From Neoconidiobolus thromboides FSU 785 (taxonomy: Eukaryota; Fungi; Entomophthoromycota), in NCBI GenBank assembly GCA_025603075.1, contig MU626339.1, positions 26,843 through 90,842 on the forward strand: 64,000 nt of DNA, read 5' to 3'. The notes under the pieces were generated by a model. The model saw only the letters and a program-made list of their open reading frames with translations, was not told the origin of the DNA and searched no databases. Position numbers and translations under genes: made by a program. This document shows positions 8,438-64,000 of the stretch, in pieces (the first letter of the stretch is position 1; each line of letters opens with the position of its first letter).

Positions 8438-11330
8438 ATATACGGAACAAATAGCTTTCTCAACAGTATATAAACTAATAATTATAACATAATTATTGAA
8501 AAATAAACCAAAACAATGTGAATTTTGATATTTTTACAGAAGTTGTCATATATTATTAAAAGACCAAATAGCTTCTTAACAATGCTTTTGTATAATAATA
8601 GCACATTATAATATAGTCGCTGATTCTATTCTATGGCTATAACTATAGTTTTATACTTAAATAAAAAATACCTAATAAATTTACTAACTTATTTAATTGA
8701 CTCTGTTCATAACTTCTATCTTGTAGAGTTTGATTCACTAATAGTTTAGTGTCGAGATCATTTTATAGATAGGGATAAATATTTCTGCGTAGAAATTATT
8801 AAAGTTTAACAGGTTAAAAGAGTTTTCTAAGGACTGGATTGACAATCATATGCTTTAAAGTTTTTGTTTTTTCATTATTTTTATATGGTTTAAATGTGAT
8901 GGTCACTGTTATTTTGCTAATAATGCTCTAAATCAAAAAAATAATGTAATTACTTTGAATATCTTTATATTTTTTCAGCTCTTTACTCATTTTCATCGCT
9001 GCCAAATGGATATGTACTTCCAGCTTCCTTTCAAGTTTTTGTGTTGGGTATCTCAATGATACCTGTAATTTGACTTCAAGTGTTTTTTTCCTATGCATTA
9101 TCTTTAAGATGCGAAGGTATTTCTAACCATAATTCTATCGAACAAAATCTCTTAGATTATGGTTATAAATGATAAGATATCTATCATTAGTAGAGTTTAA
9201 GGCTTAAATTTTTAGATAAATATATCTTTGGAGAAAGTTAACTATTGCTAATCAAAAATCTTAAATTTGATAACAAAAAGAAGCACCTTAAATCAACATT
9301 CTTTTTGCTATGACTTTTTTTATAGATTTATTGTTATTAGGAAAACAAAAGATATGTCTGGTAGTAAAGAGAGTAAACTTGTTTTTTTTATTATAGCTTT
9401 TATAATCTTACTGGTGTTTTTTATAGTGAAAATTTTATTGTCTTCAACTAAACAGACTGATCAATGTGTACATTATGTTGTCATTTTTAGCTGAAAGATC
9501 AAGTACATTGGTTCTAACTGGTGAACATTTGGCAGGTATCATACCTCTAACGTGTATTTTTATTTTTTATTCTCTACCTTGAAGTGCAAAAAGAACATCT
9601 TTAAATAAACTTGCTAGTGAATGAACTTCATTCACTTTATACAATCCAATGAATGTGTACTCTTTATACCATTGTTTTTCATAATTAAAGCATTTCAAAA
9701 ATAAAGATAAAAACAAAGATAAAACTCATCGCTTTATCATTTCCTTATCACTCTTAATCTGCTTTTATGAATGAATTATACCATCCGCTTTGGATGAGGA
9801 ATCCAAAAAACAAAAATAATATAGTTTTGAATACTTGTTACTATTTTGTTTTTAATGTTAAAAGGATTGGGTCAATTTTTTTGGTAGATGAGTTATAGTA
9901 CGTAGCTCCTAACCTGCTGTATTAACATCAACTTGATGCTATCTTTTAAATTTATATTAAATATCTATTCGATAGTCTCTTTTAGTAACGTTAAATCTAT
10001 GAAATACTATTGGTCATTAAAACATCCCAATTATAATCTATTATTACATACCAACAAGGAGGCGCTCTAATAATAAATCAATGACACGATAAAATAAAAA
10101 GCCTATGATTAATGGTAAAAACAAAGCATTACTCGTAAATAAACAAGCATATATATTGTGTTCTGTATATGTATTATTTTATGACCTTTTTTGTAAATCA
10201 AATAGTATCCAAGAAATTTTCATATCTAGTGATCCTTAGTGTAAATAGCTATCAATACTTTTGTTGAATGCTAAGTTCAAAAAAAATACTATGCTGTTGT
10301 AGGTATAATGATTACTATATAATAAAGCATAGGTATGATATTGTACTTATAAAACAAAAGTAATTTTAAAGCAGTTCCACAACTTTTAAGATAAATTTCA
10401 ATAATAGCAATATAATAGAAATAACACAAAAATGATTTAATCATGTACAATTTATTGACTTGTTAAAAATCAAATTTAGCTATAAACAAAATAATGCTTA
10501 TAAAAATAATGGTCCAAAATCCTAAAGACTTTACCTTTTTGATGGCTTAATTTACTGTAATTTGTTTTATAAAAACTAGCAACTAAAAGCAGATTATTAT
10601 ATCTGCAATGTTTTTTATTAATATACAATAAATTTACAAGAAAATTCCTATTTATATTAATGGTAGTGAAACTATCATTAATATTAGATAGAAATTTCAA
10701 AACAGTGACATAATTCTTTAGCCATACTCGTAATAATAGCTATAAAATATTTAGCAAATACTTCACAACTTAAACATTCAGCTTAGTTTTAGCATCCTCG
10801 TAGGCTATCTTATACCTAACCTCAGTCAAGACATTTCATTGTAGAACTAAAATAAAGTTACTAATATGTTACTGAAACTAACAATTTTAAATAGTCTAGA
10901 AGCAACGATTCTTTTATTAATGGAAATATGAAATAAAGCAAACTTCAAGAAGAATTGAATCACTATTTAAAATTTGAAAAAATGAGTTAGCGATCTTGTC
11001 ATCTATGTTAAACTATTTATAGGTAGCAGAGAACAATGTTAATTTAAACGTAGTTGAAATTGAAGGAAGTATGAAGAATTGAATGTTTAGATAGTAAATT
11101 TTTGATAAAAAGATCCTATAAAGTTGATTTCGATTCGTAACTAAGGCTGTCTTTTATCAAGCATTGATTTGATATTCACAACTAAAAAGAAATTAATATG
11201 TTCAGTAAATTTTCTAGCTAATTTAGTAATCATTTAAATTCTGTTTATAAATTTACCTTCCAGAGAAGCCAATAATCAGTTAAATGATTCAAGATTCCCT
11301 GAAGTCAGTATGTAAAGTATTATTTATATA

Positions 11331-35106: not shown

Positions 35107-35532
35107 AAATAATTAAAAGTTTTATAAAAAGTTTTTGTATAAAAATAAAAATATTGCTAAAAAAATAATATAAAAAGATAATATCTTTTATAATTAGATA
35201 GTAGAAATTCTTACAGTAAATCAAAATAAAAAACTCTGAGTTAATTATACCATATGAATTATAATTAATTATAAAGCTGATAAAGTGATATATTTATAAT
35301 GTTGAGATTTTATTAAAGTTATTGCTAGGTTTTAATAAGTATAAGTGCTTTTATGCTTATTTACAGATTTTAAGTAAAACAATACAACGCAACTTGATAT
35401 GATTATTTTTATTACATGAAACTTTATTGTTTAAGTATAAAATTATTATTATTACTTTGATTATTTTATTTTTCATTTTTTATTTTTTATTTCTTAATTA
35501 TGTTTACTAAATTATTGAAAGCTATAGTATAT

Positions 35533-35630
35533 GAGGATGTTTTTTTTGATTTCATCATTTTTCCATTTTTTAAGCACTGTTTGAGTAGAAAGATTGTTAC
35601 TAAAATTCTTAAACACAAAAAAACATCCCC
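35533..35630 (-). mobile_element. MITE copy
   Basis: ATAT-GAGGATGT...ACATCCCC-ATAT. Confidence 0.85.
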
Positions 35631-35670
35631 ATATAATATTACTAGATTGGTATAATTTTGTTAAATATTT

Positions 35671-35769
35671 GGGGATGTTTTTTTTTGGTTTCATTACTTT
35701 TTCCATTTTTAACTACTATTTGAGCGGAAAAATTCTTAGTAAAATCCTTAAACACAAAAATACATTCCC
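35671..35769 (-). mobile_element. MITE copy, tandem with 35533 copy
   Basis: GGGGATGTTTTTTTTGG...ATACATTCCC. Confidence 0.85.
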
Positions 35770-36254
35770 ATTTGTATATTTAAAATAATAAATTCATAAC
35801 TTTTTATTATACAAAGTAGTTATTTATACAATTTAGAAATATTTTGCAGTAGCTTAAATTCTATTTTACTTACAACACTCAAAATCATATAAATATTTAT
35901 AAATGTCATATTTTTAGCTCAAGCCTATACTTCTTAATATTGCCTAAAATATTATTAAAATATGCCATGTTTAAGTTAGTTTAAAAGCTTGGTTCAAGTT
36001 TTGTCCAATTTGATTTTTTAAAAAAGTCGCAAGTTAAGCACTAAATGCTACTAAAATAATTGGTCTTTTATTTAATTGAAATAGCTCATGCTGGGACGTT
36101 TTGTCCAATTTCAATATTTTGAAATATTTTATGCTATATAGGAAATGGACAAAAAAAAATGAACTTGCAAATTTTTTAATTTCAACAATTAAACTTGCCC
36201 ATTTAGAAAGGTTAATTCAAACAAAACAGGTATAAGAGTGATAAACTATTATCA

Positions 36255-36270
36255 ATATAAATAGTGCTCA
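36255..36270 (+). promoter_or_regulatory. TATA-containing motif ATATAAATAGTGCTCA upstream of GPCR A
   Basis: Identical 16-mer upstream of GPCR B and GPCR pseudogene E, about 45-60 nt before ATG. Confidence 0.65.
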
Positions 36271-36313: not shown

Positions 36314-37450
36314 ATGGATGCAAGAGATTATTTAAAATATATAAGATACAATGTTTTCCCCGAAATATCAAAGGTTTCGTTATCGTTAGCAATTGTGGTT
36401 GTGTTAACTATGATAGCTTTCAGTAATAAATTATATATATTCATGTACGATTTCTAAATTTATTATATAGCCATATACGATCGTAAGTTAGTGAACAGAG
36501 TGACTCTTAGATTACAAACTGTTATTGCATGCTATGATATTTGGTCACATTCTTTTCCATTATGGGCCAGAGAAAATAGCAAAGAAGGGAATCCTTTATG
36601 TACAACTATTGCCTATCAAACATTTGCATTCCCTTTGTTTTATGCTTTCCTTAATGTTGCTATTGGGATCAACTTACAGTTGGTATTTATTCATGGTATT
36701 TTTATAACAAAAAAAATTGAAGTCGCATATTATATTGGATCTATTTTACTTACTCTGTTAATTACTATTCCACCACTTGGTATAGTGTCTTTGTGATTTT
36801 TAAGTTAGTATTAACATGTATTTATTTAGCACTTGGGTTGCTTGGCTATAGTGAATTTAATGGATGCTATCTAGCGTCAGATGATGAGTATTTCTCTAAA
36901 ATGTTTGATTTCTTTGCTAACGTCCTAGTGAATCTCATTTGTATGGCTTATTTATTGGTCATTGTAATTCTTATTTTAATAAAGCTATACCAAGGGCATA
37001 AAGTAACAAAAGAAAATCAAGTAGGAATTGATGTTAACAAATCATCTGAGACGCTTAAGAACATTCGATTACTTGCATCAAGAACGTGATATTATTTATG
37101 ATTTATAGAATATAGCTAATTTCTTTTAGTTTGTTATATCCAATAGTAATGATTGTAGCTAATATTGGAGTAGTTATAAGTCAAACAGCTTACGACCTTT
37201 TAAACATCGATTCTCCAGAATTATCGGTTTTAGCTTATATCACAGGTGGGCTATTGGGTACTCTTAATTTTGTTGCTTTCTTTTGTGACCCAACTATCCA
37301 TCAGGCACTTACAAGTGTATATTTTAGAACTATAAAGAAACAAAGCGAAGCAGACAGAATAAGTATAATTATTTAAGTAGGAATTATAATGCAAAGTGTT
37401 TTTAGATCATAATAACGATGTGTCGATCTAAATGATATGAGAAATGATAG
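36314..37450 (+). CDS. 7TM GPCR A (Git3/cAMP-receptor-like family); last exon frameshifted so C-tail is truncated
   Basis: MDARDYLKY start, seven hydrophobic helices over 4-5 exons, TM3 Cys (NPLC) and ECL2 Cys (NGCYL), TM6 RTLLYP, TM7 LGTLNFVAFFCDPT. Confidence 0.8.
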
Positions 37451-39398
37451 CTTCAAAGATGTTTGTAAAGCTATTGATGATAAAATAGAAGGTTAGATGC
37501 CTATTTGATATTTCAGATTTATTGAAAATTTATAGCATGTGCATAGTGTAATTAATAATTAAAGCCATATGCCTGAAGTTTTAAATGGTTTTTAATTGCA
37601 TTCTAATCTATACACTATTTAATAAAAATTATAGAGCTCAACAAATTGAATGGCCCAATATGGAATTACATATAGTCATTTAATAACTATTTTTTGTATT
37701 TTTTTTACTATTTTTTTAAACACATTAATCTAAAAGGAAAAGCAGTGAGGTTTGTTTGGAAAAAAGAACAAATAATTAGTGTTTAAGGAGTGCAGTATAT
37801 AGATTCTAGAAGTAAGTTTTTAGGAAACTGAAATAATGAGATTCTTTTGAAGATCTCTTAGCAATAGCCAGAGTGTGTTTACTTTTTCTTATAACCAAGG
37901 CTATCCTTTTTTTATAATTTTTTGTTTTAAATTTAAAATTTCGAAAACTTCAAAAAACCGAGTTCCTAGAACACTCCAATTTTGGAAATTTATTCAGTTT
38001 TTTGACTGACTCTATGCTTAACAGTTAGAAATACTACATTTGGTTTATTTGTATCCCTTAATTAAAATTTCAAAATAGCTAATTTATGTAATTGAGTTGT
38101 TAAAGTTATTTATTGGTTTTAAGATTTTTTAAAATAAGTTTTAGTTACTCAAAACATCAAATGCCTAAGTATTACCTAATATACTCGTTGACTTTTTGTA
38201 GCAGTTATATATAATACCTGCTATTGAATTTGCTATTTTAAATATTTACTTAATGCTTCATCTTTAGCGAGTATTACATTTGACCTATAAACGCAGTATT
38301 AAATAATATCCCAATAATTCAGTTTGATGTATCATATCTACATCAATTCTTATTTGACAGTTTTGTTGCAGTGGTATCACGTTGAGGTATATTTCATAAA
38401 GTATCACTTTATCAAAAACACTATTTTTAGTTAATGTATAAAGCCCTATCTTAAATTAATGTGGCTCATTTTTGTATTATAAAAGTAAATGGGCCGATTA
38501 TTTGTTGATTTATTCATGAAAATATATCTTATTACAGAAAATGATCCAAGTGATTCGTAAAATAGAATTCAATAGACATTAATGTGGTGCCATGGCGCAA
38601 AAAAAGTCAAATAAACACTATTCTAGAACGCAATTTCTTGAAATTAGCGTTACATTATATAAACAGTCAATGTGTAGTATTATTAACGCGGTAAGTAGCT
38701 TCTAAATTTGAAAAAGATAGAAAATACCGAGAAGTTGACATTTCTAGCGTTTATTAAGATAAAAGCCCTTAGTTGGCCTTATAAAGTATTCTTAAATTAA
38801 GAACCTATATGTAGATACATTTTGACTTCAGTGTTCAACTAACAGTTTTTTAATTTGATATTGTATATGTAGTGGTCAAAGGAATGAAGCACAAAGACAT
38901 TCTAGTCTTTTGATCCTAAAACCTTAAGCCAAGTGCTTGACCTTTAAAAATATAAGATAATTCCTAGCTATTACCTGATATACTTTTATGCAATGGTGAG
39001 AGGTAAAAATCAAAGTATTTTCCAATATAGGTTTAAGCAAGAAGCTTATTTTTGAGCTCTTAAAATGTTTCTATATTTAGGCATTTCACTTGCTTATTTT
39101 CAAAAAACATGATACTAGCTGTTATATCTACATATTTAACAAGCTTTTATCATCTTTAGGATGTTCAAGAACCATTGTGTATATTATACTTGGTTTGATT
39201 TCTATTATTGTGTACCTATTTAAATGTTAAGAGACATATACCTTTTTCGTTAGTATGTCATAAAATTTTGTGTCATATTTATACTCCACAGGAATATGAA
39301 TTATTCATATTAACTAAAATGTACATTTATACAGTTTAAAAGGATTTACAGCCTTTTTTATGTATTCTGTCATATTTAAGCACAATAACCAGTTACAT

Positions 39399-39497
39399 GG
39401 GGATGTATTTTTTTGTTTAGAAATTTTACTAACAATCTTTCCCCTCAAATAGCGCTTAAAAAATTGAAAAAGTAATGAAATCGAAAAAAATATCCTC
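39399..39497 (+). mobile_element. MITE copy 240 nt upstream of GPCR B
   Basis: GGGGATGTATTTTTTG...ATATCCTC. Confidence 0.85.
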
Positions 39498-39679
39498 AAA
39501 CCTTATACCAACTTGAACTTTCATATTAGCAATAGGTATTAAAATTATCTCAATATTAAGGAATAATATATTTTTAATTGTGGTTCATACCTCTTGACAT
39601 TATCGAAAATACTACTAGAATATATTTTAACTTTAGAAAAAATTAATGACCATAAAACAAGTATAATAAGCCATTAGCA

Positions 39680-39695
39680 ATATAAATAGTGCTCA
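39680..39695 (+). promoter_or_regulatory. TATA-containing motif ATATAAATAGTGCTCA upstream of GPCR B
   Basis: Same 16-mer as at 36255. Confidence 0.65.
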
Positions 39696-39736
39696 TGGTT
39701 TAAGTTATGGAAATTACAAGTTATCTATTTAATGAA

Positions 39737-40958
39737 ATGAATGCAATCGAATATAAAAATTATATAAGAGTTCAAGTTTTTCCAAAGATATCATTGCTTT
39801 CCTTAGTTTTAGCGATTATAGTTGTATTAACTATGATAGCTTTCAGTAATAAACTATTGATATTGTATGTAAGTTATTAACTTTATTCTATAGCCATTTA
39901 TGATCGTAAGTTAGTGAACAGAGTGACTCTTAGATTACAAACTGTTATTGCATGTTATGATATTTGGTCACATTCTTTTCCATTATGGGCTAGAGAAAAT
40001 AGCAAAGAAGGAAACCCTCTATGTCTAGCTATTGCTTATCAAGTGTTTGCATTTCCTTTGTTTTATTCCTTCCTTAATGTTGCTATTGGGATCAACTTAC
40101 AGTTGGTATTTATTCATGGTATTTTTATAACAAAAAAAATTGAAGCTGGATACTATATTGGATCTATTTTACTTACTCTGTTAATTACTATCCCTCCACT
40201 TGGTATGATGTTTTTAATATTTTAAATTAGCATTAATTAGTATTTATTTAGCACTTGGGCTGCTTGGTTATAGTGAATTCAATCAATGTTATCTTACATC
40301 GAATGATGAACATTTCTCAAAGATGTTTGATTTCTATGCTGTCAATTTAGTAACTATCATTTGTATGGTTTATTTGTTTGGCATTGTAATATCAACTGCA
40401 GTAAAACTAAATAGTCAGACACAAATAGTTCAAAACTTTAGATTGTTCCGTGGGGCAAGAGCTTCGATTGATGCTGCCAGGAGCGTAAAAATCATGGGGT
40501 TCAGAATGTAAAAAGGTTAATCATTTTTAGAGCCAAAGCTAATGCTTATTTAATTTAGTTTGCTGTATCCAATAGTAATGATTGTTTCTAATATTGGATC
40601 GCTTGTAGCTCAAACCGCTTATGATCTTGCAGACAATAAAGCACCAGAATTAAAGGTCTTCTCTTATATTACACGTAGTGTATTGGGTACCCTCAATTTC
40701 GCTGCTTTCTTTTGTGACCCAACTGTACATTCGGCGTTTAGAAAATTATATTTAAGATGCACCACTAAATTAGAGTACCATAATAGCTTAGGTGACAAAG
40801 GTACGTAGTTCCTGTGTTATACAATTTCACTAACTCTTTTAGATGGTAACAGGCTCACTTATTCTGATATAATTAAGATTGAAAGCTCAGGTACAGATTC
40901 TACTATGAGTGAAGAAGAATATGATAGACAGCTTGAAAAATTTATCCAAACTCTTTAA
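39737..40958 (+). CDS. 7TM GPCR B (same family), 5 exons, divergent ICL3 and C-tail
   Basis: MNAIEYKNY start; introns at homologous positions; ends EKFIQTL-stop. Confidence 0.85.
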
Positions 40959-41728
40959 TCCAAGTCTTTTGTAGCAATAAATTTTGTTGGATTGATTCCA
41001 ATGTTTGAGCTAATTAATAGTAATATCTGTAACAATTTCATAGAAGAAATCCAAATCAAATCATTTTAACTATTTTTTCAAAAACATTTTATTATGTTAT
41101 TCAAAATGTTCTGATGCAAGTTCATGTATATTATAAAACGGTTAATTATTGATTGCAACACTATTAAAGAATTTACAGAATAATTTCATTTTTACAAATG
41201 AAAAAAGCTTACTGTTGCAATCAAGAACTATAATTTTTTACACACATAAATTTATACTGGAACATTTTGAATTCAAATACTCTATGCTTATTTTTGTTTT
41301 TGTTATAACTGCTACATTTATGATGAATAGTGTGAAATTTAGCTAACTCTGATTTCATAAAGGCCTTATTCAGATAACTGTTGTTTTTTTGACACAAAGA
41401 GCCGCAGTTAAAGTATAGAACTATAACATCAAATTATCTTCACACTAAAAAGTATTTACTATTGCTATTATGAATATTTGGATTTTTGACTGAAACTTAC
41501 AATCACTTACCAATGTCCTTATTTATATTGTGTAAATAATTATTGTTAAAAAGTTTCGAGGCAATCCTTATTATAGCTAATGACAGAGTGATGATACTAA
41601 AAATAATACATGAAGGTTCTATAGTTTACAATATTTTATAAATGCAAGAGCATAGCATAACTGATATTTATATAATAGATGAAGCTTATTTCTATAAAAT
41701 AAAACATAGATGGATTAGCCTACATATT

Positions 41729-41822
41729 GGTATGTCATTTTTTGTTTAAGAATTTCACTAACAAGTTTTTCACTGAATAGAATCCAAAAATATATAGCTA
41801 AATGAAACTAGAAAATGTCCCT
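41729..41822 (+). mobile_element. MITE copy, strongly degraded
   Basis: TTTTTTGTTTAAGAATTTCACTAACAAG core, ATGTCCC end. Confidence 0.55.
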
Positions 41823-42453
41823 TATTTAGTTTTTTTGGGGAATTTTTATAAATTCATAAAGTGCAAATTATGAAAGTAAGCTCTAACTTACTTTCAAAAA
41901 AAGATTGTATAATTTTCTATATATTCAAACATAAAATTCTATAAATAATTTCAATCAAGGTTTTAAACTTGCCTTTATGATTTTTTGAGAAATTCTTTAA
42001 TTGGGCTATATGTAGTAATGGGCCACAATATCAATTTTCTAAAATTATAAATTTAGGCATGGTCACATTGTTTTACTCAATAAGTATTAAATATCTTTTA
42101 GTATGCTACCAACTTTCAATCTATATAGGACATATTCTTATACATTATCTAGGTTTACCAAGCCTAGATATTTACAGAAATGACAGTTATGCATACCAGT
42201 ATTATATTAATACGATGTAGAGATTTTGAAACTTTAAAATTTTAAAATCATCAAAAAAGCTGAATAATTTGTTTAACAGTAATATGAAATTATTTTCCAA
42301 TATTATTAAAACAGGTTTTAAAGAGCAAGATAACAGGAACATTTACATTAACAAAACAAAAGTAATGTAAAAATACTTAGGGGAGAATACTATATAATGA
42401 AGTATATGTAGATAAAAAATGATTATCAGTTTAAATCCAAACATATCAATAAG

Positions 42454-43681
42454 ATGGATGCAACTGAATATAAAAATTATATAAGAGTTCAAGTTTTTCC
42501 AAAGATATCATTGCTTTCCTTAGTTTTAGCGATTATAGTTGTATTAACTATGATAGCTTTCAGTAATAAACTATTGATATTGTATGTAAGTTATTAACTT
42601 TATTCTATAGCCATTTATGATCGTAAGTTAGTGAACAGAGTGACTCTTAGATTACAAACTGTTATTGCATGTTATGATATTTGGTCACATTCTTTTCCAT
42701 TATGGGCTAGAGAAAATAGCAAAGAAGGAAACCCTCTATGTCTAGCTATTGCTTATCAAGTGTTTGCATTTCCTTTGTTTTATGCCTTCCTTAATGTTGC
42801 TATTGGAATCAACTTACAGTTGGTATTTATTCATGGTATTGATATAACAAAAAAAATTGAAGCTGGATACTATATTGGATCTATTTTACTTACTCTGTTA
42901 ATTACTATCCCTCCACTTGGTATGATGTTTTTAATATTTTAAATTAGCATTAATTAGTATTTATTTAGCACTTGGGCTGCTTGGTTATAGTGAATTCAAT
43001 CAATGTTATCTTACATCGAATGATGAACATTTCTCAAAGATGTTTGATTTCTATGCTGTCAATTTAGTAACTATCATTTGTATGGTTTATTTGTTTGGCA
43101 TTGTAGGCTTAGTTTTAATAAAACTGTTCCGAGGACACAATTTAATAAAAGAAAACCAAGTAGCAATTGATGCTAACAGATCATCTGAGATCCTTAAAAA
43201 TATTCGATTACTTGCTTCAAGAACGTAATGCTGGTTTTTATTTCTATGTATTTGAGCTAATTTAATTTAGTTTGCTGTATCCAATAGTAATGATTGTTTC
43301 TAATATTGGATCGCTTGTAGCTCAAACCACTTATGATCTTGCAGACAATAAAGCACCAGAATTAAAGGTCTTCTCTTATATTACACGTAGTGTATTGGGT
43401 ACCCTTAATTTCGTTGCTTTCTTTTGTGACCCAACTGTTCACCAAGCACTTAGAACTGTATACTTCAGAGTTATAAAGAAGCAAAATGACTCAGATAAAA
43501 TAAGTACAGTTATTTTGTAGCAAATCTAAATATATTAACCATTTTATTAGATTTCAATGATGATGCATTTGATTTAAAGGATATAGAAGCTAGTGACTTT
43601 AAGGATACTTCTAGCACTATTAACGATGAGGGAGAAGGGAGAAAGCCTATTCATTATTCTAAATTTATTAAGAACTTATAA
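42454..43681 (+). CDS. 7TM GPCR C (same family), 5 exons
   Basis: MDATEYKNY start; near-identical to B through TM5; last exon FNDDAFDLKDIE...YSKFIKNL-stop. Confidence 0.85.
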
Positions 43682-43748: not shown

Positions 43749-43843
43749 GAGATATTTTCGATTTCATTACTTTCTCCATTTTTTAAGTGCCATTTAAGCG
43801 GAAAATTTGTTAATAAAATTCTTAAACACAAAAATACATCCCC
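43749..43843 (-). mobile_element. MITE copy just downstream of GPCR C
   Basis: TTCATTACTTT..TAAGTGCCATTTAAGCGG..ATACATCCCC-ATAT. Confidence 0.85.
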
Positions 43844-44005
43844 ATATATACTTGTTAATATTTTCGATTTTTTCTACACTTTATTATTTATTACTATTTT
43901 ATTATTTTATTATTTCATTATTTATTATTTTTATCTTTTTATATTTTTCACTTTATTTACATTTTTATTCAACAAATCATTCAAAATAATTATTTTTTAT
44001 AATAT

Positions 44006-44103
44006 GGGAGTGTTTTTTTTGACTTCATTATTTTTTCCATTTTTTAAGTGGTATTTGAGCGGAAAATTTGTTAGTAAATTCTTAAATACAAAAGTACATC
44101 CCC
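44006..44103 (-). mobile_element. MITE copy
   Basis: ATAT-GGGAGTGT...ACATCCCC-ATAT. Confidence 0.85.
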
Positions 44104-44703
44104 ATATGAATAATAATCTAATAAATACTACTTAAATTACAATAATAAAAAACCAAAAAAATGAAACATTTAGACTATTCAAGGGTGCTTTTTAAATTTT
44201 CTTATAAATTGATTATTTTTATATAATATAAAAATAAAATTAAAACATTTTGACTATTTGACTTTGAAAGCTACTATTGATTCGATTTAAATGTAAATTG
44301 GGTATTTTCAGCTTTGTATCTGTAATTTTACCGTGGCAAAATTTTCTATTTTTGTATGAGTAATTATAAAACTAAAATGCCCAATCCATATTTAATTTGT
44401 ATCAGAGTCAATAGAAAACTTAAGTCAAAGATTTTTAAAAATTCAACCAAGTTTTTGAACTTTATTTAAAAAATGTAAAAATTAAGTTTATTATTAATAT
44501 AAGGAGTCATTAAATAAACATATGGTTCTATTTAATAACTTTATTAATAAATTTATTAAATAAAACAATTAGGCTATATAATATTAAAATGTTTGTACTT
44601 TCTATATTTTAGTAGTCCACTTCACTATAAAGTGGGTAAAAGCAACATATCAAAGAAAGCTAAGAAGCTAAAAAACCGTCAAACAGGCTAAATTAAAACG
44701 TAG

Positions 44704-54164: not shown

Positions 54165-55392
54165 GATTCCTTTTTATAAATTTTTAAGAAACTTTTGAAA
54201 ATAGAAAAGGGTCTTGGAAAATTTAATCAATTGAAAATATGTTCCGCTTTTTTCTAAGTTTTCGAAAATGGATAGAATTTAAGAACAGAAAATTTAATGT
54301 TTTTCTTTTTCTGGTTTATCATAATTAATAAAGTGTCATTTGATTGCCCATGGTTACTATGAAATATTAGTAGTTTAATTTTTAAATTGATACTTTTTGA
54401 ATTTTATGTGTTCGCGTATACTCTGAGTCTATTAAAATTAATATAAAAAATGAGACAATTTACTTATAAAGTATATACATTTTAACTAATAATTAAGTAT
54501 AACATTAGTTGTAGGTTTATTTTTTAAGAATTCATAAAAGGCTTGAACTTCGAAATACTTGACTTGACTAACAAATTAATAAAAAAGAAATTGAATAATC
54601 TCAAGCATATAATTGATAAGGATTTCCAATAAACAGTATATATTGTAAACTTTTAATAAGCTTATGATATCAAATAGAATTTATTCCTTCTATTTAATCA
54701 ATAATAATGTTATAATTGTCTTTAAGCCTTCATTTTCCATATCATTTAAATCAAATGCGTCATATTATAATCTAACAACTTCTACTCAATATATTTATAA
54801 ATACTATAAAACAGTGTTATCTATTTTATATAATTAACCTTGTCTATCGACTTTAAAGTATATACTTTTAAATGCTTGATGGATAGTCAGATTAGAAAAG
54901 AGGGCAGTGAAGTTAAGTATGCCTATTGAAATAACTGTAATACGAGAGAATTTTTAACTCTAGTGCTTGAATGTTTCCAAGATCGTAAGCCGATCGGCCT
55001 ATAGCTGCTCCAGTATTACCAATGATCCTTAGTATTGGATATAACAAGCTAAAAAAAAAGTTTAAATAAATGAAAATACAGTAATTATTATGTTCTTGAG
55101 GCAAGCAATTGAATATTCCTAAGCATTTTAGCTGATTTACTGACATCAATAGCTACTTGATTTTTTTATTATATTATGAATGTGGAGTAGTTCTGTTAAA
55201 GCTAGAGCTACAACAACCAATAAACAAGCTACAAAAATAATGTTTGCTAGCGACTAGCAAAAAAACCAAACATTTTAGAATAGTGCTCGTTATTCGATGT
55301 AAGATGATATCCCTGAAAATCACTATGTTCGAGTACCCCGTTTACTAAATGGACTTTTTTTAATATCAAGTTCATACATACAATAATAATAT

Positions 55393-55490
55393 GTGAATGT
55401 ATTTTTTCGTTTAAGAATTTTGCTGATGATCTTTCCACTCAAATAGTGCTTAAAAATGGAAAAAGTGATGAAGGCAAAAAAAACATCCCC
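55393..55490 (+). mobile_element. MITE copy inside GPCR D pseudogene
   Basis: ATAT-GTGAATGT...ACATCCCC-ATAT. Confidence 0.85.
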
Positions 55491-55550
55491 ATATACTAAG
55501 TGGTAGGATAGCAACTAAGAGAGTAAACAAAATAGACCCAATATAATATA

Positions 55551-55648
55551 AGGGTGTTGTTTCTGGCTTCATCACTTTTCCCATCTTTCAAGCGCTATTT
55601 AGATGGAGAAATTATTAGTAAAATTATTAGATACAAAAATACATCCCC
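55551..55648 (-). mobile_element. MITE copy inside GPCR D pseudogene
   Basis: AGGGTGTTG...ATACATCCCC-ATAT. Confidence 0.8.
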
Positions 55649-57422
55649 ATATATTATACCGTATTTACTATTGCTATTAATGTATTGATAGTTTCAAAAA
55701 ACTACACTCTAAAATGATACTTATTTTGCCTCCATTTTTCTACTATGACGCCACATAACTGAATGACTATACTTTATAAAATTCAATTGTATAGTAAATA
55801 TGCTATAGGTAAGATAATATTTGGTATATATAAGTTAGTCTAATAACGTTACAATAAAATTACCAAATAGGAATTGATATTATATTTTGCATAACATTTA
55901 ATTCATAAATTATTTAACTCTGCATTTACATATCAATTATGGTATTTAATAAAGATTAAATGATAGATAAATATTTTAAGGTAGTTTCATAATGTATGGT
56001 ATCACATACCATTAATAAAAAATAATGAAATTATAACTATTAATCAAAATGTTTGTTATTACTACTATATTATCAGGTCCAATTTTAATAAATTTAAAAT
56101 TATTATGCCTATTTTATACTTTATTTACATAAATCAATAATAATAGAAAGTTAGTTGAGCGATGCAATGGGCTTAAAGAAATATTCAGTTTCTTCAAATA
56201 TGAACAATTTTAACATTAGGTAAAACCAATAAATTAGAAAAATAGTTAAAAATATATACTTTGCTCTAAACATCTGATTATTATATAAGTGATAAGCCAT
56301 TATAAAGTCAGCAATATTGGAAATGTACTAGAGTCATAAAACAAAGATCCAAAATCAACGATATTTTACTTTAAAATGAAAATGAAAAACAAAATGGGAA
56401 GCTATAATTTATTTCTGAGAATATTCACTTATTTTCTAATGCAATTAGGATTATAGTTACCTGCCCATTAGATAGTCAAAAACATGAGCGTGTATGCTTT
56501 TGGCATCATAATTTATCATCAAATTAACTATTAAATTAGGAATTTGATATTACTATTAGATGTTCCTGAAATCAGCCAAAAGAAGCTATCGAGAAAAATT
56601 TAAAAAGAGACAATAGTAAAAATAAAGGTAAAACTTTTAATGGTTAATTTTAATTTATTTAGTAAGATATAAACTTTAGAAAAACTTACTTTATGATATA
56701 GTATCTTTATTGATTTGTTATTAAACTACAAATTTGAATTGAAAAATTAGTGTTCTTAAAAGCCAGTTCTACAAAAATAAGTTAAAGGTTATAGCAAAAT
56801 AAGAACAAACGCCTAGATGGAAATGTGAATCTAAAAAACAAGCTGAGTTGTAAATTCTAAAGTGTTTAGAGTTTGAGAAAGTAGCATCTGATGATAAAAC
56901 GTGATTAAAAAAGGAGCTTCCATGGCTTGAGGAAAAAGACAATTACATGCTAAAACTAGCGGATAACGAAAACACAAAACCCCAAAACAAATTAAAACTG
57001 CTAAGGTTATATTCGTAAGAAGTTGTAGCTAAATTTTATCTTCTATAGCTTAACTATGTAGTTGGTATGATTCTTAGTAATCAAATTTCAAAAAACTAAA
57101 AATAATATTTATAGGCATAAAGAATTTCAAATCTTACCTCAACCTATATAAAAAGTCAAACATAACTGACATTATTCTGTGTAAAACTCCAAATTATCTT
57201 ATAAGCCTCCATGATAGTGATCCCTTGTTGCCTCATATATTATTTAACAAATAATGTTTAGGTAATTTGAACTTTAAAGATGTTAATATACATATACAAA
57301 ATACAATAAATAAATACTTTAATTTTTTCTTGGGATAAAAGTGATATAAACCCATTATTTAATCTCATATCAATATTTCTATATAAATCGAAAAATAAGT
57401 TGAAAAAGCTAGATATATAATA

Positions 57423-58173: not shown

Positions 58174-59411
58174 TTACAAACTTTCAATAAATTTAGAATA
58201 TAGGATAAGGTTCTATTCTTATTCATTATCAATAACACTAAAACAATCCTTGTAATCACCAATCTCTATATGATTTAAATTAAATGTATCAACCTTATAA
58301 CCTACTAGTACATTTAACATATTAGAATTTACAATAAGATAACTCTGATTATTTTATCTAAATCATATTGTTTTTTTATAACTCCCATATATATGGTGTT
58401 GAGTGCTTGATGGATGGTTGAATCACAAAAAAAGGCAATAGAATTAAGGGAACTCTATAAATTAACTCTAGTATAAATAAAGATCATTAATTCCAGAGAT
58501 TCAATGTTTGCAAGATCGTAAACAGACTGATATATTAATAATTTTAAATTAGCAATAATCATTACTATTGAATACAATAAGCTAAAAAAATTAATTCATA
58601 CTAAATATAAAAACTAAATTACATTCTTGAGACAAGTAATCGTATGCTCTTAATCATTTCGTTTGAACTAATAGCATCAATGTATACTTGATGCCCTTTT
58701 ATTATACTATGGATTCTATATAGCTTTAATAAAACCAGAATTACAATGAAAGTTTGACAAGTCATACAAATAAGAGGTACTAAATTACTAGCAAAAAAGA
58801 ATCAAAAATTTCAGTGTAATGCCCATCATTTGACGTAAGACAACATCCACTAAATTTACTATAGATAAATTTACTATAGATAAATTTCCCGTTTGCCACA
58901 TAAATAGCAGTTCGACTAATTTTATAAATAAAGAACAAAACATCAAGTGGAAGAATAATGATTAATGGAATAAGTAGAATAGAGCCAACATAACGACCTG
59001 CTTCAATTTTTTATTTCATTTTAATACTATGAATAAATAGTAACTGTAAATTGATTTCAATAGTAACGTTGATAAAAGAATAAAGTAAAATAAATACTGG
59101 TATCATATAAACAATGATTGTGCACAAAGGAGAACCTTCGTAGTTATATCTACTATCCATAATAAAAAGGAGTGAGACCAAATACCGTAACAACAAATAA
59201 CTATTTGTAATCTTAAAATTACTCTATTCACTAACTTACTATCATATATAGCTGTTGAACTACATTAAAAATATGTTTATAAAAATGACTGTATATTATT
59301 ATTTAAATTATTCATAATTACTACAACAATCATAGTCAAATTTAATAAAATATCCGGTATCACCGAATGAACCTCTTGAATTATATACTTTGTATATGAG
59401 GTTACATTCAT
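58174..59411 (-). pseudogene. GPCR E pseudogene (same family)
   Basis: MNVTSYTKYI start, YEGSPLCTII, INLQLLFIH, FCDSTIHQAL, tail YSKFIESL; multiple stops and frameshifts. Confidence 0.8.
58851..58887. repeat. 15-bp tandem duplication (TAAATTTACTATAGA x2 plus partial) in GPCR E pseudogene
   Basis: Directly visible. Confidence 0.85.
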
Positions 59412-59457: not shown

Positions 59458-59473
59458 TGAGCACTATTTATAT
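59458..59473 (-). promoter_or_regulatory. ATATAAATAGTGCTCA motif upstream of GPCR E pseudogene
   Basis: Reverse complement of TGAGCACTATTTATAT equals the motif at 36255 and 39680. Confidence 0.6.
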
Positions 59474-62841: not shown

Positions 62842-64000
62842 TTATAAATTTTTGATATAGCTAGAATACTGAACTGGGATTTGTCCTTCTATTTCACTAT
62901 TAGTATCATTAACATAATCCTTAGAATCACTAGTTTTCATTTCATTCAAAGCAAACGCATCAACATTAGAATCTACCAATATATTAATATTTCACATTTT
63001 AGTTTAAACCATGTTACCTATTTTGTCTGAATCATTTTGTTTTTTTATAGTTCTCAAATATACTGTTTTAAGCGCTTGATGAATTGTTGGGTCGCAAAAG
63101 AAAGCAATAAAGTTAAGTGTACCTAGTAGACTGGCCGTAATGTTACCGAATAGTTTGAATTCTGTAGATGTAGTATTTGCAAGGTCATAAGCTGCTTGAT
63201 TTAGAACTATCCCAATATTAGAAACAATCATTGCTATCGGATATAGTAGACTAAGATAAATTAGTTCGTATAAATAGAAGTAAAAATCAACATTACATCC
63301 TTGAGGCAAGTAATCGAATATTTTTAATCATCTCAGCTGATTCACTAGCATCAACCACTACCTGATGGCCTTTTATTAAACTGTGACCTCGGTGTAGCTT
63401 CAACAAAACTATAGCTACGATAACCAACAGGTAAGCCATACAAACGAGGTTTACTAGACAGTTGGCATAAAAATCAAACATTTTAGAGTAATATTCATCA
63501 TTCGATGTAAGATAACATCCGTTGAATTCACTGTATCCAAGTGAACCATTTGCTAAATAAACTTTTTAGTATTAGTTATATATTTATAATAGTAATGTAC
63601 CAAGTGGCGGGATAGTAACTAAGAGAGTGAGTAAAATTGAGCAAACATAATACCCTGCTTCAATTTTTTTTGTTATTTCAACACCATGAATAAATACTAG
63701 CTGTAAATTGATTCCGATAGCAACGTTAAGAAGAGCATAAAAAAAGGGAAATGCTAATGATTGATATGCAATAGTTATACATAAAGGAGATCCTTCATAA
63801 TCATTATTTCTAACCCATAATAGAAAAGAGTGTGACCAAATGTCATAACATGAAATAACGGTTTGTAATCTAAGAGTCACTCTGTTTACCAACTTATAAT
63901 CATATATAGCTATTAAAATAAGTTAAAAATACACTTGAAATGATGTTTGTAATTTATTACTTAAAGCAATCATAACCACTACAACTATGGTAGCTAAAGT
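62842..64000 (-). CDS. 7TM GPCR F (same family), apparently intact, 5' end beyond window edge
   Basis: VNRVTLRLQ, YEGSPLC, IPPLG, NGCYLTS, RLLASRM, LLYPIAM, LGTLNFIAFFCDPT, tail YSSYIKNL-stop. Confidence 0.85.

Follow-up and report, generated by a model that had tools for sequence, protein, structure and literature searches.

How can two neighbouring receptor genes be almost identical over most of their length, introns included, and share so little in two other stretches of the same reading frame? The question is raised by genes B and C of Neoconidiobolus thromboides FSU 785, a fungus belonging to the Zoopagomycota (Entomophthoromycotina). The two genes lie on the plus strand of a 64,000-nt stretch of contig MU626339.1 (positions 26843-90842; assembly GCA_025603075.1; the whole stretch is called here the window) at 39707-40958 (B; K502DRAFT_365596, P0084, 353 aa) and 42454-43681 (C; K502DRAFT_365597, P0082, 345 aa). 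Both are members of a lineage-specific, clustered family of seven-transmembrane (7TM) proteins with a G protein-coupled receptor (GPCR) fold, six of which are found in the window: A, B and C in tandem on the plus strand, and D, E and F on the minus strand. An earlier reading of the letters alone (the sequence-only reading) had proposed that segmental gene conversion homogenises ligand recognition in B and C and preserves distinct signalling outputs. We consider it about 75% probable that interlocus gene conversion, and not a fresh duplication, made the B-C mosaic; the proposed meaning for signalling is weighed separately.

Mosaic structure of genes B and C

B and C were aligned together with their flanks by MAFFT, and identities were then taken per segment. 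From codon 5 to the membrane end of transmembrane helix 5 (TM5), identity between the two genes reaches 99.2% over 641 nt (tract 1; B 39749-40388, C 42466-43105), and the two introns that lie in this tract, intron 1 (48 nt) and intron 2 (49 nt), are 100% identical. The sequence-only reading had described this near-identity from the start through TM5, and its coordinates match ours almost to the base. Past this point comes B-specific block 1 (40389-40547; C counterpart 43106-43259), which consists of the coding sequence of the third intracellular loop (ICL3) and of intron 3 up to its nucleotide 40. Its coding part (40389-40507), corresponding to the cytosolic ends of TM5 and TM6 (P0084 residues 196-234), displays only 36% B-C identity over 119 nt, its length being equal in both genes, and the intron part (40508-40547) displays 49%. 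The last 11 nt of intron 3 are excepted from this divergence and open tract 2 (B 40548-40726, C 43260-43438; 97.8% over 181 nt), which continues through TM6, the third extracellular loop (ECL3) and TM7 up to the motif DPTV. The genes part again in B-specific block 2 (40727-40958; C counterpart 43439-43681), where, beginning with the codon that follows DPTVH, identity is 59% in helix 8 (40729-40800), 55% in intron 4 and 41% in exon 5, and this divergence runs on into the 3' flank. The 5' flanks of B and C are unrelated as well (43%). All four tract edges are sharp: in the space of a single codon, identity of 100% gives way to about 36%, with no intermediate zone. Thus, the abrupt divergence over 119 nt, the near-identity regained over TM6-ECL3-TM7 and the renewed divergence from helix 8 onwards, all of which had been noticed previously, are confirmed by the alignment.

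The near-identical core takes in the extracellular face and the TM bundle, together with ICL1 and, one residue excepted, ICL2. It holds five residue differences between B and C, one of which, a Phe/Asp difference in ICL2, is derived from gene A (see below). Point changes private to one gene are found at 40067, 40694 and 40702 in B and at 40617 in C. As for the divergent parts, the ICL3, helix 8 and exon 5 of C share 63-80% identity with their counterparts in A, D, E and F, versus 36-60% for those of B, in agreement with the earlier proposal that C, and not B, resembles the rest of the family there.

The exon models of both genes correspond to the Joint Genome Institute (JGI) proteins. The exons of B are 39707/39737-39845, 39894-40202, 40252-40507, 40559-40800 and 40843-40958, with four of four introns of the GT-AG type and 42-51 nt in length, and those of C are 42454-42562, 42611-42919, 42969-43224, 43271-43503 and 43551-43681. 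Two details of the sequence-only reading had to be amended: the donor of intron 1, taken as GTAAGT at 39869, is A|GTAATA at 39846, and the final residue of the B loop, read as Met, is an Ile created by splicing. The JGI start of B is an upstream in-frame ATG at 39707, which adds ten residues (MEITSYLFNE); A and C begin at the ATG that is homologous to the one at 39737 in B.

Evidence for gene conversion

To evaluate the B-C identity we took 651 sites that are polymorphic among A, B, C, F and G (G being a paralogue on contig MU626777.1) and applied to them a GENECONV-style permutation test of run lengths, with 2000 permutations. The B-C identity runs of 140 and 116 sites in tract 1 and of 47 sites in tract 2 were each above all 2000 permutations (p<0.0005). 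Since this identity extends to introns and synonymous sites, purifying selection cannot account for this identity. A recent tandem duplication is ruled out as its source, the flanks and intergenic DNA being unrelated: the A-B and B-C intervals and the region downstream of C have in common only copies of a dispersed repeat of about 100 nt. On the basis of the permutation test, the unrelated flanks and the identical introns, the earlier claim of segmental gene conversion between B and C is supported.

A smaller patch within tract 1 involves gene A. At B 40070-40141 (plus strand; A ~36647-36718), A and B agree at 21 of 21 polymorphic sites (p<0.0005), and three of the four B-C differences of tract 1 (40090, 40124 and 40125) fall inside this patch and include the Phe-to-Asp change in ICL2. 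At these difference sites, C has the state of gene F. The simplest reading of the sequences is that A would have been copied into B after the C-lineage copy into B. Outside the A patch, differences amount to 3/179 in tract 2 and 1/569 in tract 1 (Fisher p=0.045; p=0.18 when the patch is included), and an age difference between the two tracts is marginal.

On another contig, the pair H1/H2 repeats the B/C mosaic. H1 (P0002) lies on the plus strand of MU626377.1 (L003) at 10001-11230, and H2, which is unannotated, lies tail to tail with it on the minus strand at 12557-11400. Three tracts (10185-10320, 10515-10605 and, over TM6-TM7, 10825-10985) are 93-97% identical between them; TM1, TM5-ICL3, intron 3 and the tail are only about 40-60% identical.

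Protein fold and position of the divergent blocks

Pfam searches with single exons and with ten full-length homologues (B, C and eight others) gave no family match. A full-library HMMER search with exon 2 retrieved only 80 cluster representatives, of which the closest were from N. thromboides, and the more distant named relatives were from Glomeromycota (Ambispora, Entrophospora) and Umbelopsis. Dicty_CAR (PF05462; best E 3e-7) was matched by four of 41 distant homologues; B, C and their close paralogues remain under the Pfam gathering threshold, and in this they differ from the Dicty_CAR family proper.

The AlphaFold 2 models of B (predicted local distance difference test 87, predicted template modelling score 0.83) and C (85 and 0.82, respectively) depict seven long TM helices, a beta hairpin in ECL2 and an amphipathic helix 8, that is, GPCR topology. 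In Foldseek searches against the PDB, all of the best 50 matches were GPCRs (template modelling score 0.5-0.72, E 1e-5 to 1e-4), and ranks 1-10 of the B model in the Swiss-Prot set of the AlphaFold database include Arabidopsis GCR1, GPR157 and Dictyostelium cAR1, cAR3 and cAR4. Structure matches in the ESM Atlas likewise include GPR157 and cAR-like clusters. Residues C90 and C162 (B numbering; top of TM3 and ECL2) are invariant in 41 homologues and probably form a disulfide. According to the models, the family is a divergent cAR/GCR1/GPR157-like group with the GPCR fold, the likeness to this group lying in the best structural matches of B, and its coupling to G proteins is putative.

In both models TM5 and TM6 are prolonged into the cytosol by about 20 residues and form a helical hairpin there (TM5 and TM6 at 169-215 and 218-259 in B, and at 159-202 and 208-249 in C). 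The variable block (B 196-234) coincides exactly with this hairpin, and block 2 starts where helix 8 starts. The loop has 39 residues and aligns without gaps across N. thromboides paralogues, which is why both ICL3 versions are 119 nt long. The placement of the divergent blocks in ICL3 and in helix 8 plus the C-tail, already assumed in the sequence-only reading, is thus supported by confident GPCR-fold models of both proteins. As predicted proteins, B and C may fairly be described as having the same core and different cytosolic faces.

Ancestry of the divergent blocks of B

Separate trees were obtained for the core (205 columns) and for ICL3 plus helix 8 (57 columns). In the core tree, B grouped with C at 100/100 and the pair was nested in (A,F,(B,C)) at 100/98, followed by G and J. 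In the ICL3 and helix 8 tree, A, C, F, G and J formed a clade that excludes B, whose branch measures 1.0 substitutions per site. When paralogue N was included, the approximately unbiased (AU) test on ICL3 and helix 8 rejected the grouping of B with C (p=0.026) and its placement inside A/B/C/F/G (p=0.021). The grouping of B with N was not rejected for ICL3 and helix 8 (p=0.35) and was rejected for the core (p=3e-7). The AU results, the core grouping of B with C and the divergence of introns 3 and 4 give modest support to the earlier claim that the intracellular parts of B come from another lineage, and suggest that its ICL3 and helix 8 derive from a deeper one, outside the A/C/F/G clade. The joint divergence of introns 3 and 4 with the coding blocks argues against fast protein evolution in place.

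Paralogue N is the nearest sequence to the ICL3 and helix 8 of B. It lies on MU626331.1 (L010, 10116-11013) and represents the unannotated remainder of the P0005 gene, whose model (112 aa) covers only its start; its equivalents of exons 2-4 are intact. The ICL3 of B is 33% identical to that of N versus 13% to that of C, and B and N have in common the pattern FRG..AS..A..SVK....R and, where helix 8 begins, an identical DPTVHSA. N is excluded as the donor of the B blocks, the DNA identity to B in ICL3 being only about 55%. Searches for a closer relative gave the following results: P0084 residues 190-240 matched only B itself among 5.8 billion proteins, B exon 3 as a short query yielded no donor candidate, and blastn and tblastn with both blocks on both strands of the window plus ten loci found only the weak relative N.

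Two other origins of the blocks were considered and rejected. An inverted or shuffled C-type origin is excluded as no reverse-strand match was obtained, and a C loop whose RLFRG and IDA motifs had been shifted by indels is excluded by the gapless family alignment and the conserved 39-aa loop. The B blocks seem to be functional: their frame is open, their introns are of the GT-AG type, their 39-aa loop keeps the family register, and the exon 5 tail, acidic and rich in Ser/Thr, ends in KFIQTL and so keeps the family-wide C-terminal (K/R)x(I/L)xxL. Being open, spliced and family-like, the blocks would derive from a real, constrained family member.

In the 5' flank, an exact 14-mer, ATAAATAGTGCTCA, is present at 39682-39695 of B and 36257-36270 of A (plus strand) and at 59458-59471 of E (minus strand), in each case preceding the homologous ATG by 42-55 nt; the regions upstream of C, G, H1 and H2 lack it. 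This 14-mer is probably a core-promoter element shared by A, B and E.

A possible history of B and its alternatives

In the history that we favour, C-lineage sequence would have been copied into B by interlocus (ectopic) conversion between tandem paralogues over two tracts, the first running from the ATG as far as the end of TM5 and taking in introns 1 and 2, the second running from the end of intron 3 to TM7, and a patch of 36-72 nt would have been copied later from A into B. The spared blocks (ICL3 with most of intron 3; helix 8, intron 4, exon 5 and the 3' flank) would stem from the deeper lineage, whose nearest known relative is N on MU626331.1. Since C is congruent with the A/F/G clade along its full length and B is not, B would be the recipient, and we infer that copying went from the C lineage to B. 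Homologous recombination needs pairing, and divergence suppresses copying. The heterologous blocks may therefore have barred the homologous copying, with the tracts ending where B-C alignability ends. The outcome would be two intact genes with nearly the same core and different surfaces at the cytosolic TM5/TM6 hairpin and the tail, which might differ in coupling.

Several points weigh against this history. If B had belonged to the deep lineage throughout, its TM parts (about 60% nt identity) would have been too diverged for conversion to start, and the events could have been a Lepore-type crossover, stepwise conversion or the import of blocks into a C-like copy. The presence of the motif ATAAATAGTGCTCA of A and E in the 5' flank of B fits a local-clade and not a deep-lineage backbone. 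In AU tests made without N, rejection is significant neither for the grouping of B with C (p=0.068) nor for a placement of B within the clade (p=0.17), and the tree support for a foreign lineage comes from 57 columns. Moreover, the donor of the B blocks, or a close relative of it, was not found in the protein and locus searches described above, and the locus is present in one assembly only (GCA_025603075.1).

Some of these points are accommodated by the reverse history, which we regard as unlikely. According to it, B would be a C-like (or A/C-like) local duplicate that imported two deep-lineage blocks, or else the product of an unequal crossover in TM5 followed by a C-to-B patch over TM6-TM7, the block donor being a deep-lineage family member now lost, unassembled or unannotated. 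The 5' motif, common only to the local genes A and E, is as expected under this history, and so are the four sharp edges with no zone of intermediate identity. The relative excess of differences in tract 2 over tract 1 outside the A patch hints at separate events, and many family copies lie at contig ends, so that some may be missing from the assembly. However, no donor was found among the 5.8 billion proteins or the ten loci, the unrelated flanks of B and C mean that B is not a simple fresh duplicate, and an import from a diverged donor needs flanking homology as much as conversion from C into B does.

A second alternative concerns not the copying but what has kept its limits. In the adaptive view put forward in the sequence-only reading, selection keeps the cores identical and purges those conversions that would erase the distinct ICL3 and tails, so that one signal is given two outputs. 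The ICL3 hairpin and the helix 8/tail of GPCRs contact G proteins, kinases and arrestins, and in the models the spared blocks map to these very parts, the cytosolic TM5/TM6 hairpin and helix 8 with the tail. Furthermore, the blocks of B are old and yet intact with their family motifs, in a cluster in which D and E have degenerated and A is left without its tail, and the same mosaic is seen in H1/H2. Similar selective readings were proposed for CCR2/CCR5, EMR2/CD97 and TLR1/6 (PMC2720389). Nevertheless, all four edges fall exactly where B-C alignability is lost, as neutral, homology-limited conversion predicts without selection on signalling. Within A/C/F the ICL3 is no faster than the TM parts (A-C 80% versus 84% and 78%) and therefore gives no sign of diversifying selection. 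The tracts are also very recent (1-4 differences), too young to show long-term maintenance, and the A-derived change lies in ICL2, another coupling surface, so that the "output" is not confined to the two blocks. The intact B blocks and the recurrence in H1/H2 fit selection and homology barriers equally well. We therefore hold the adaptive view to be doubtful. Indirect evidence for such a receptor pair is limited to the intact frames and motifs of the B blocks and to an RNA run that contains 0.16-0.18 of the sampled words. A broader version, in which conversion of the 7TM core is tolerated or favoured and is selectively excluded from ICL3 and the C-tail, giving one sensing and several interchangeable signalling modules with H1/H2 as another instance, seems to us more doubtful still.

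An assembly artefact (collapse, chimeric joining or over-polishing of paralogous reads) is highly improbable. It is true that the locus comes from a single assembly and that contigs frequently break off within a member of the family, as in F at the window end. However, the different flanks, ICL3s and tails, together with eight private differences between the two copies, exclude a collapse, and a wrong join in a shared tract could swap the pairing of ICL3 and tail but could not create two ICL3s each flanked by near-identical sequence. In addition, a run from the same organism (which may be the source data) contains 0.91 of the sampled 31-mers, JGI called both genes intact, and the independent pair H1/H2 has the same pattern.

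Rapid evolution in place, with B a true sister of C throughout and only its ICL3 and tail very fast, could draw on the long branch of B, its want of a close relative and the AU tests made without N, but is scarcely credible, since introns 3 and 4 diverged too and introns 1 and 2 are identical, which selection at the protein level cannot produce, since the AU tests with N reject both groupings, and since identity drops within a single codon.

Comparison with known systems

Unequal crossover between tandem paralogues makes hybrid genes, as in haemoglobin Lepore and the red/green opsin hybrids. B is like them in being a chimera whose 5' and 3' parts come from different paralogues of a tandem array, and differs in that it alternates between C-like, foreign, C-like and foreign sequence. 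These four alternations make a single crossover insufficient, and at least one conversion patch is needed.

Splice isoforms of GPCRs with a common ligand pocket and a different ICL3 or C-tail include D2 long/short, the EP3 tail variants and the PAC1 hip/hop cassettes. As in these isoforms, B and C would combine one ligand-binding core with alternative cytosolic segments at ICL3 and the C-tail. However, the D2, EP3 and PAC1 variants are isoforms of one gene whose coupling differences have been demonstrated, whereas B and C are two genes whose difference in coupling is putative. If the modular reading were true, gene copies would achieve in this fungus what animals achieve by splicing of ICL3 and tail.

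Mosaic concerted evolution by gene conversion has been documented for CCR2/CCR5, the EMR2 (ADGRE2)/CD97/EMR3 chimera and TLR1/TLR6, and the authors proposed that the mosaic keeps one function while another diverges (PMC2720389, PMC8877049). As in B and C, adjacent paralogues were there homogenised in part by interlocus conversion and diverged in the rest. In contrast to the mammalian pairs, the family described here is an uncharacterised fungal one, in which nearly the whole 7TM core was converted and ICL3 and the tail were spared. An expansion of GPCRs has been reported in the related Conidiobolus coronatus (PMC12387763). The B-C pair adds a sharp new example, from a fungal 7TM family that has not been studied, to a type of event already known.

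Should B and C share a ligand and differ in coupling, they would represent a natural chimera experiment in which coupling is told apart from ligand recognition, within a family of GPCRs that lacks both a Pfam model and a studied member and belongs to an early-diverging, insect-associated fungal lineage. A family-wide pattern of this kind could show how clustered receptor genes diversify their outputs.

Other family members and surrounding DNA

The window is AT-rich (about 25% GC), with short GT-AG introns. Counting the window and nine other contigs fetched, the family comprises about 20 copies or fragments. Gene A (K502DRAFT_365595, P0083, 306 aa; 36314-37376, plus strand) has a C-type ICL3 and a truncated tail: the equivalent of its exon 5 (37360-37545) contains stops in the family frame, and the JGI model stops at 306 aa, the usual tail being missing. 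The three copies on the minus strand have a C-type ICL3 as well. D (54700-55600) is a pseudogene that contains stops and an inserted repeat and has lost splice sites; E (58350-59411) is also a pseudogene, with in-frame stops and lost GT/AG sites; and F (62845-64000), with a C-type tail too, is intact where present, its exon 1 being cut by the end of contig MU626339.1, which coincides with window position 64000.

The intergenic DNA around the receptor genes is filled by a dispersed repeat of about 100 nt that resembles miniature inverted-repeat transposable elements and is present in dozens of copies at 75-90% identity. Copies were found at 43755-43857, 44013-44107, 39386-39500, 41721-41777, 35528-35771 and 55389-55657, among many more, as well as in all the fetched loci, and the repeat is also inserted in pseudogene D.

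Besides F, several family copies lie at contig ends (L004, both ends; L006, start; L007, end); one of them, P0001, stops exactly at the TM5/ICL3 boundary. The assembly thus seems to break inside this receptor family. Lastly, on MU626318.1 (L009, 7025-7810), 2 kb upstream of the intron-bearing P0007, there is a family copy in which the equivalents of exons 2, 3 and 4 are contiguous and intronless, which suggests either intron loss or a processed copy.

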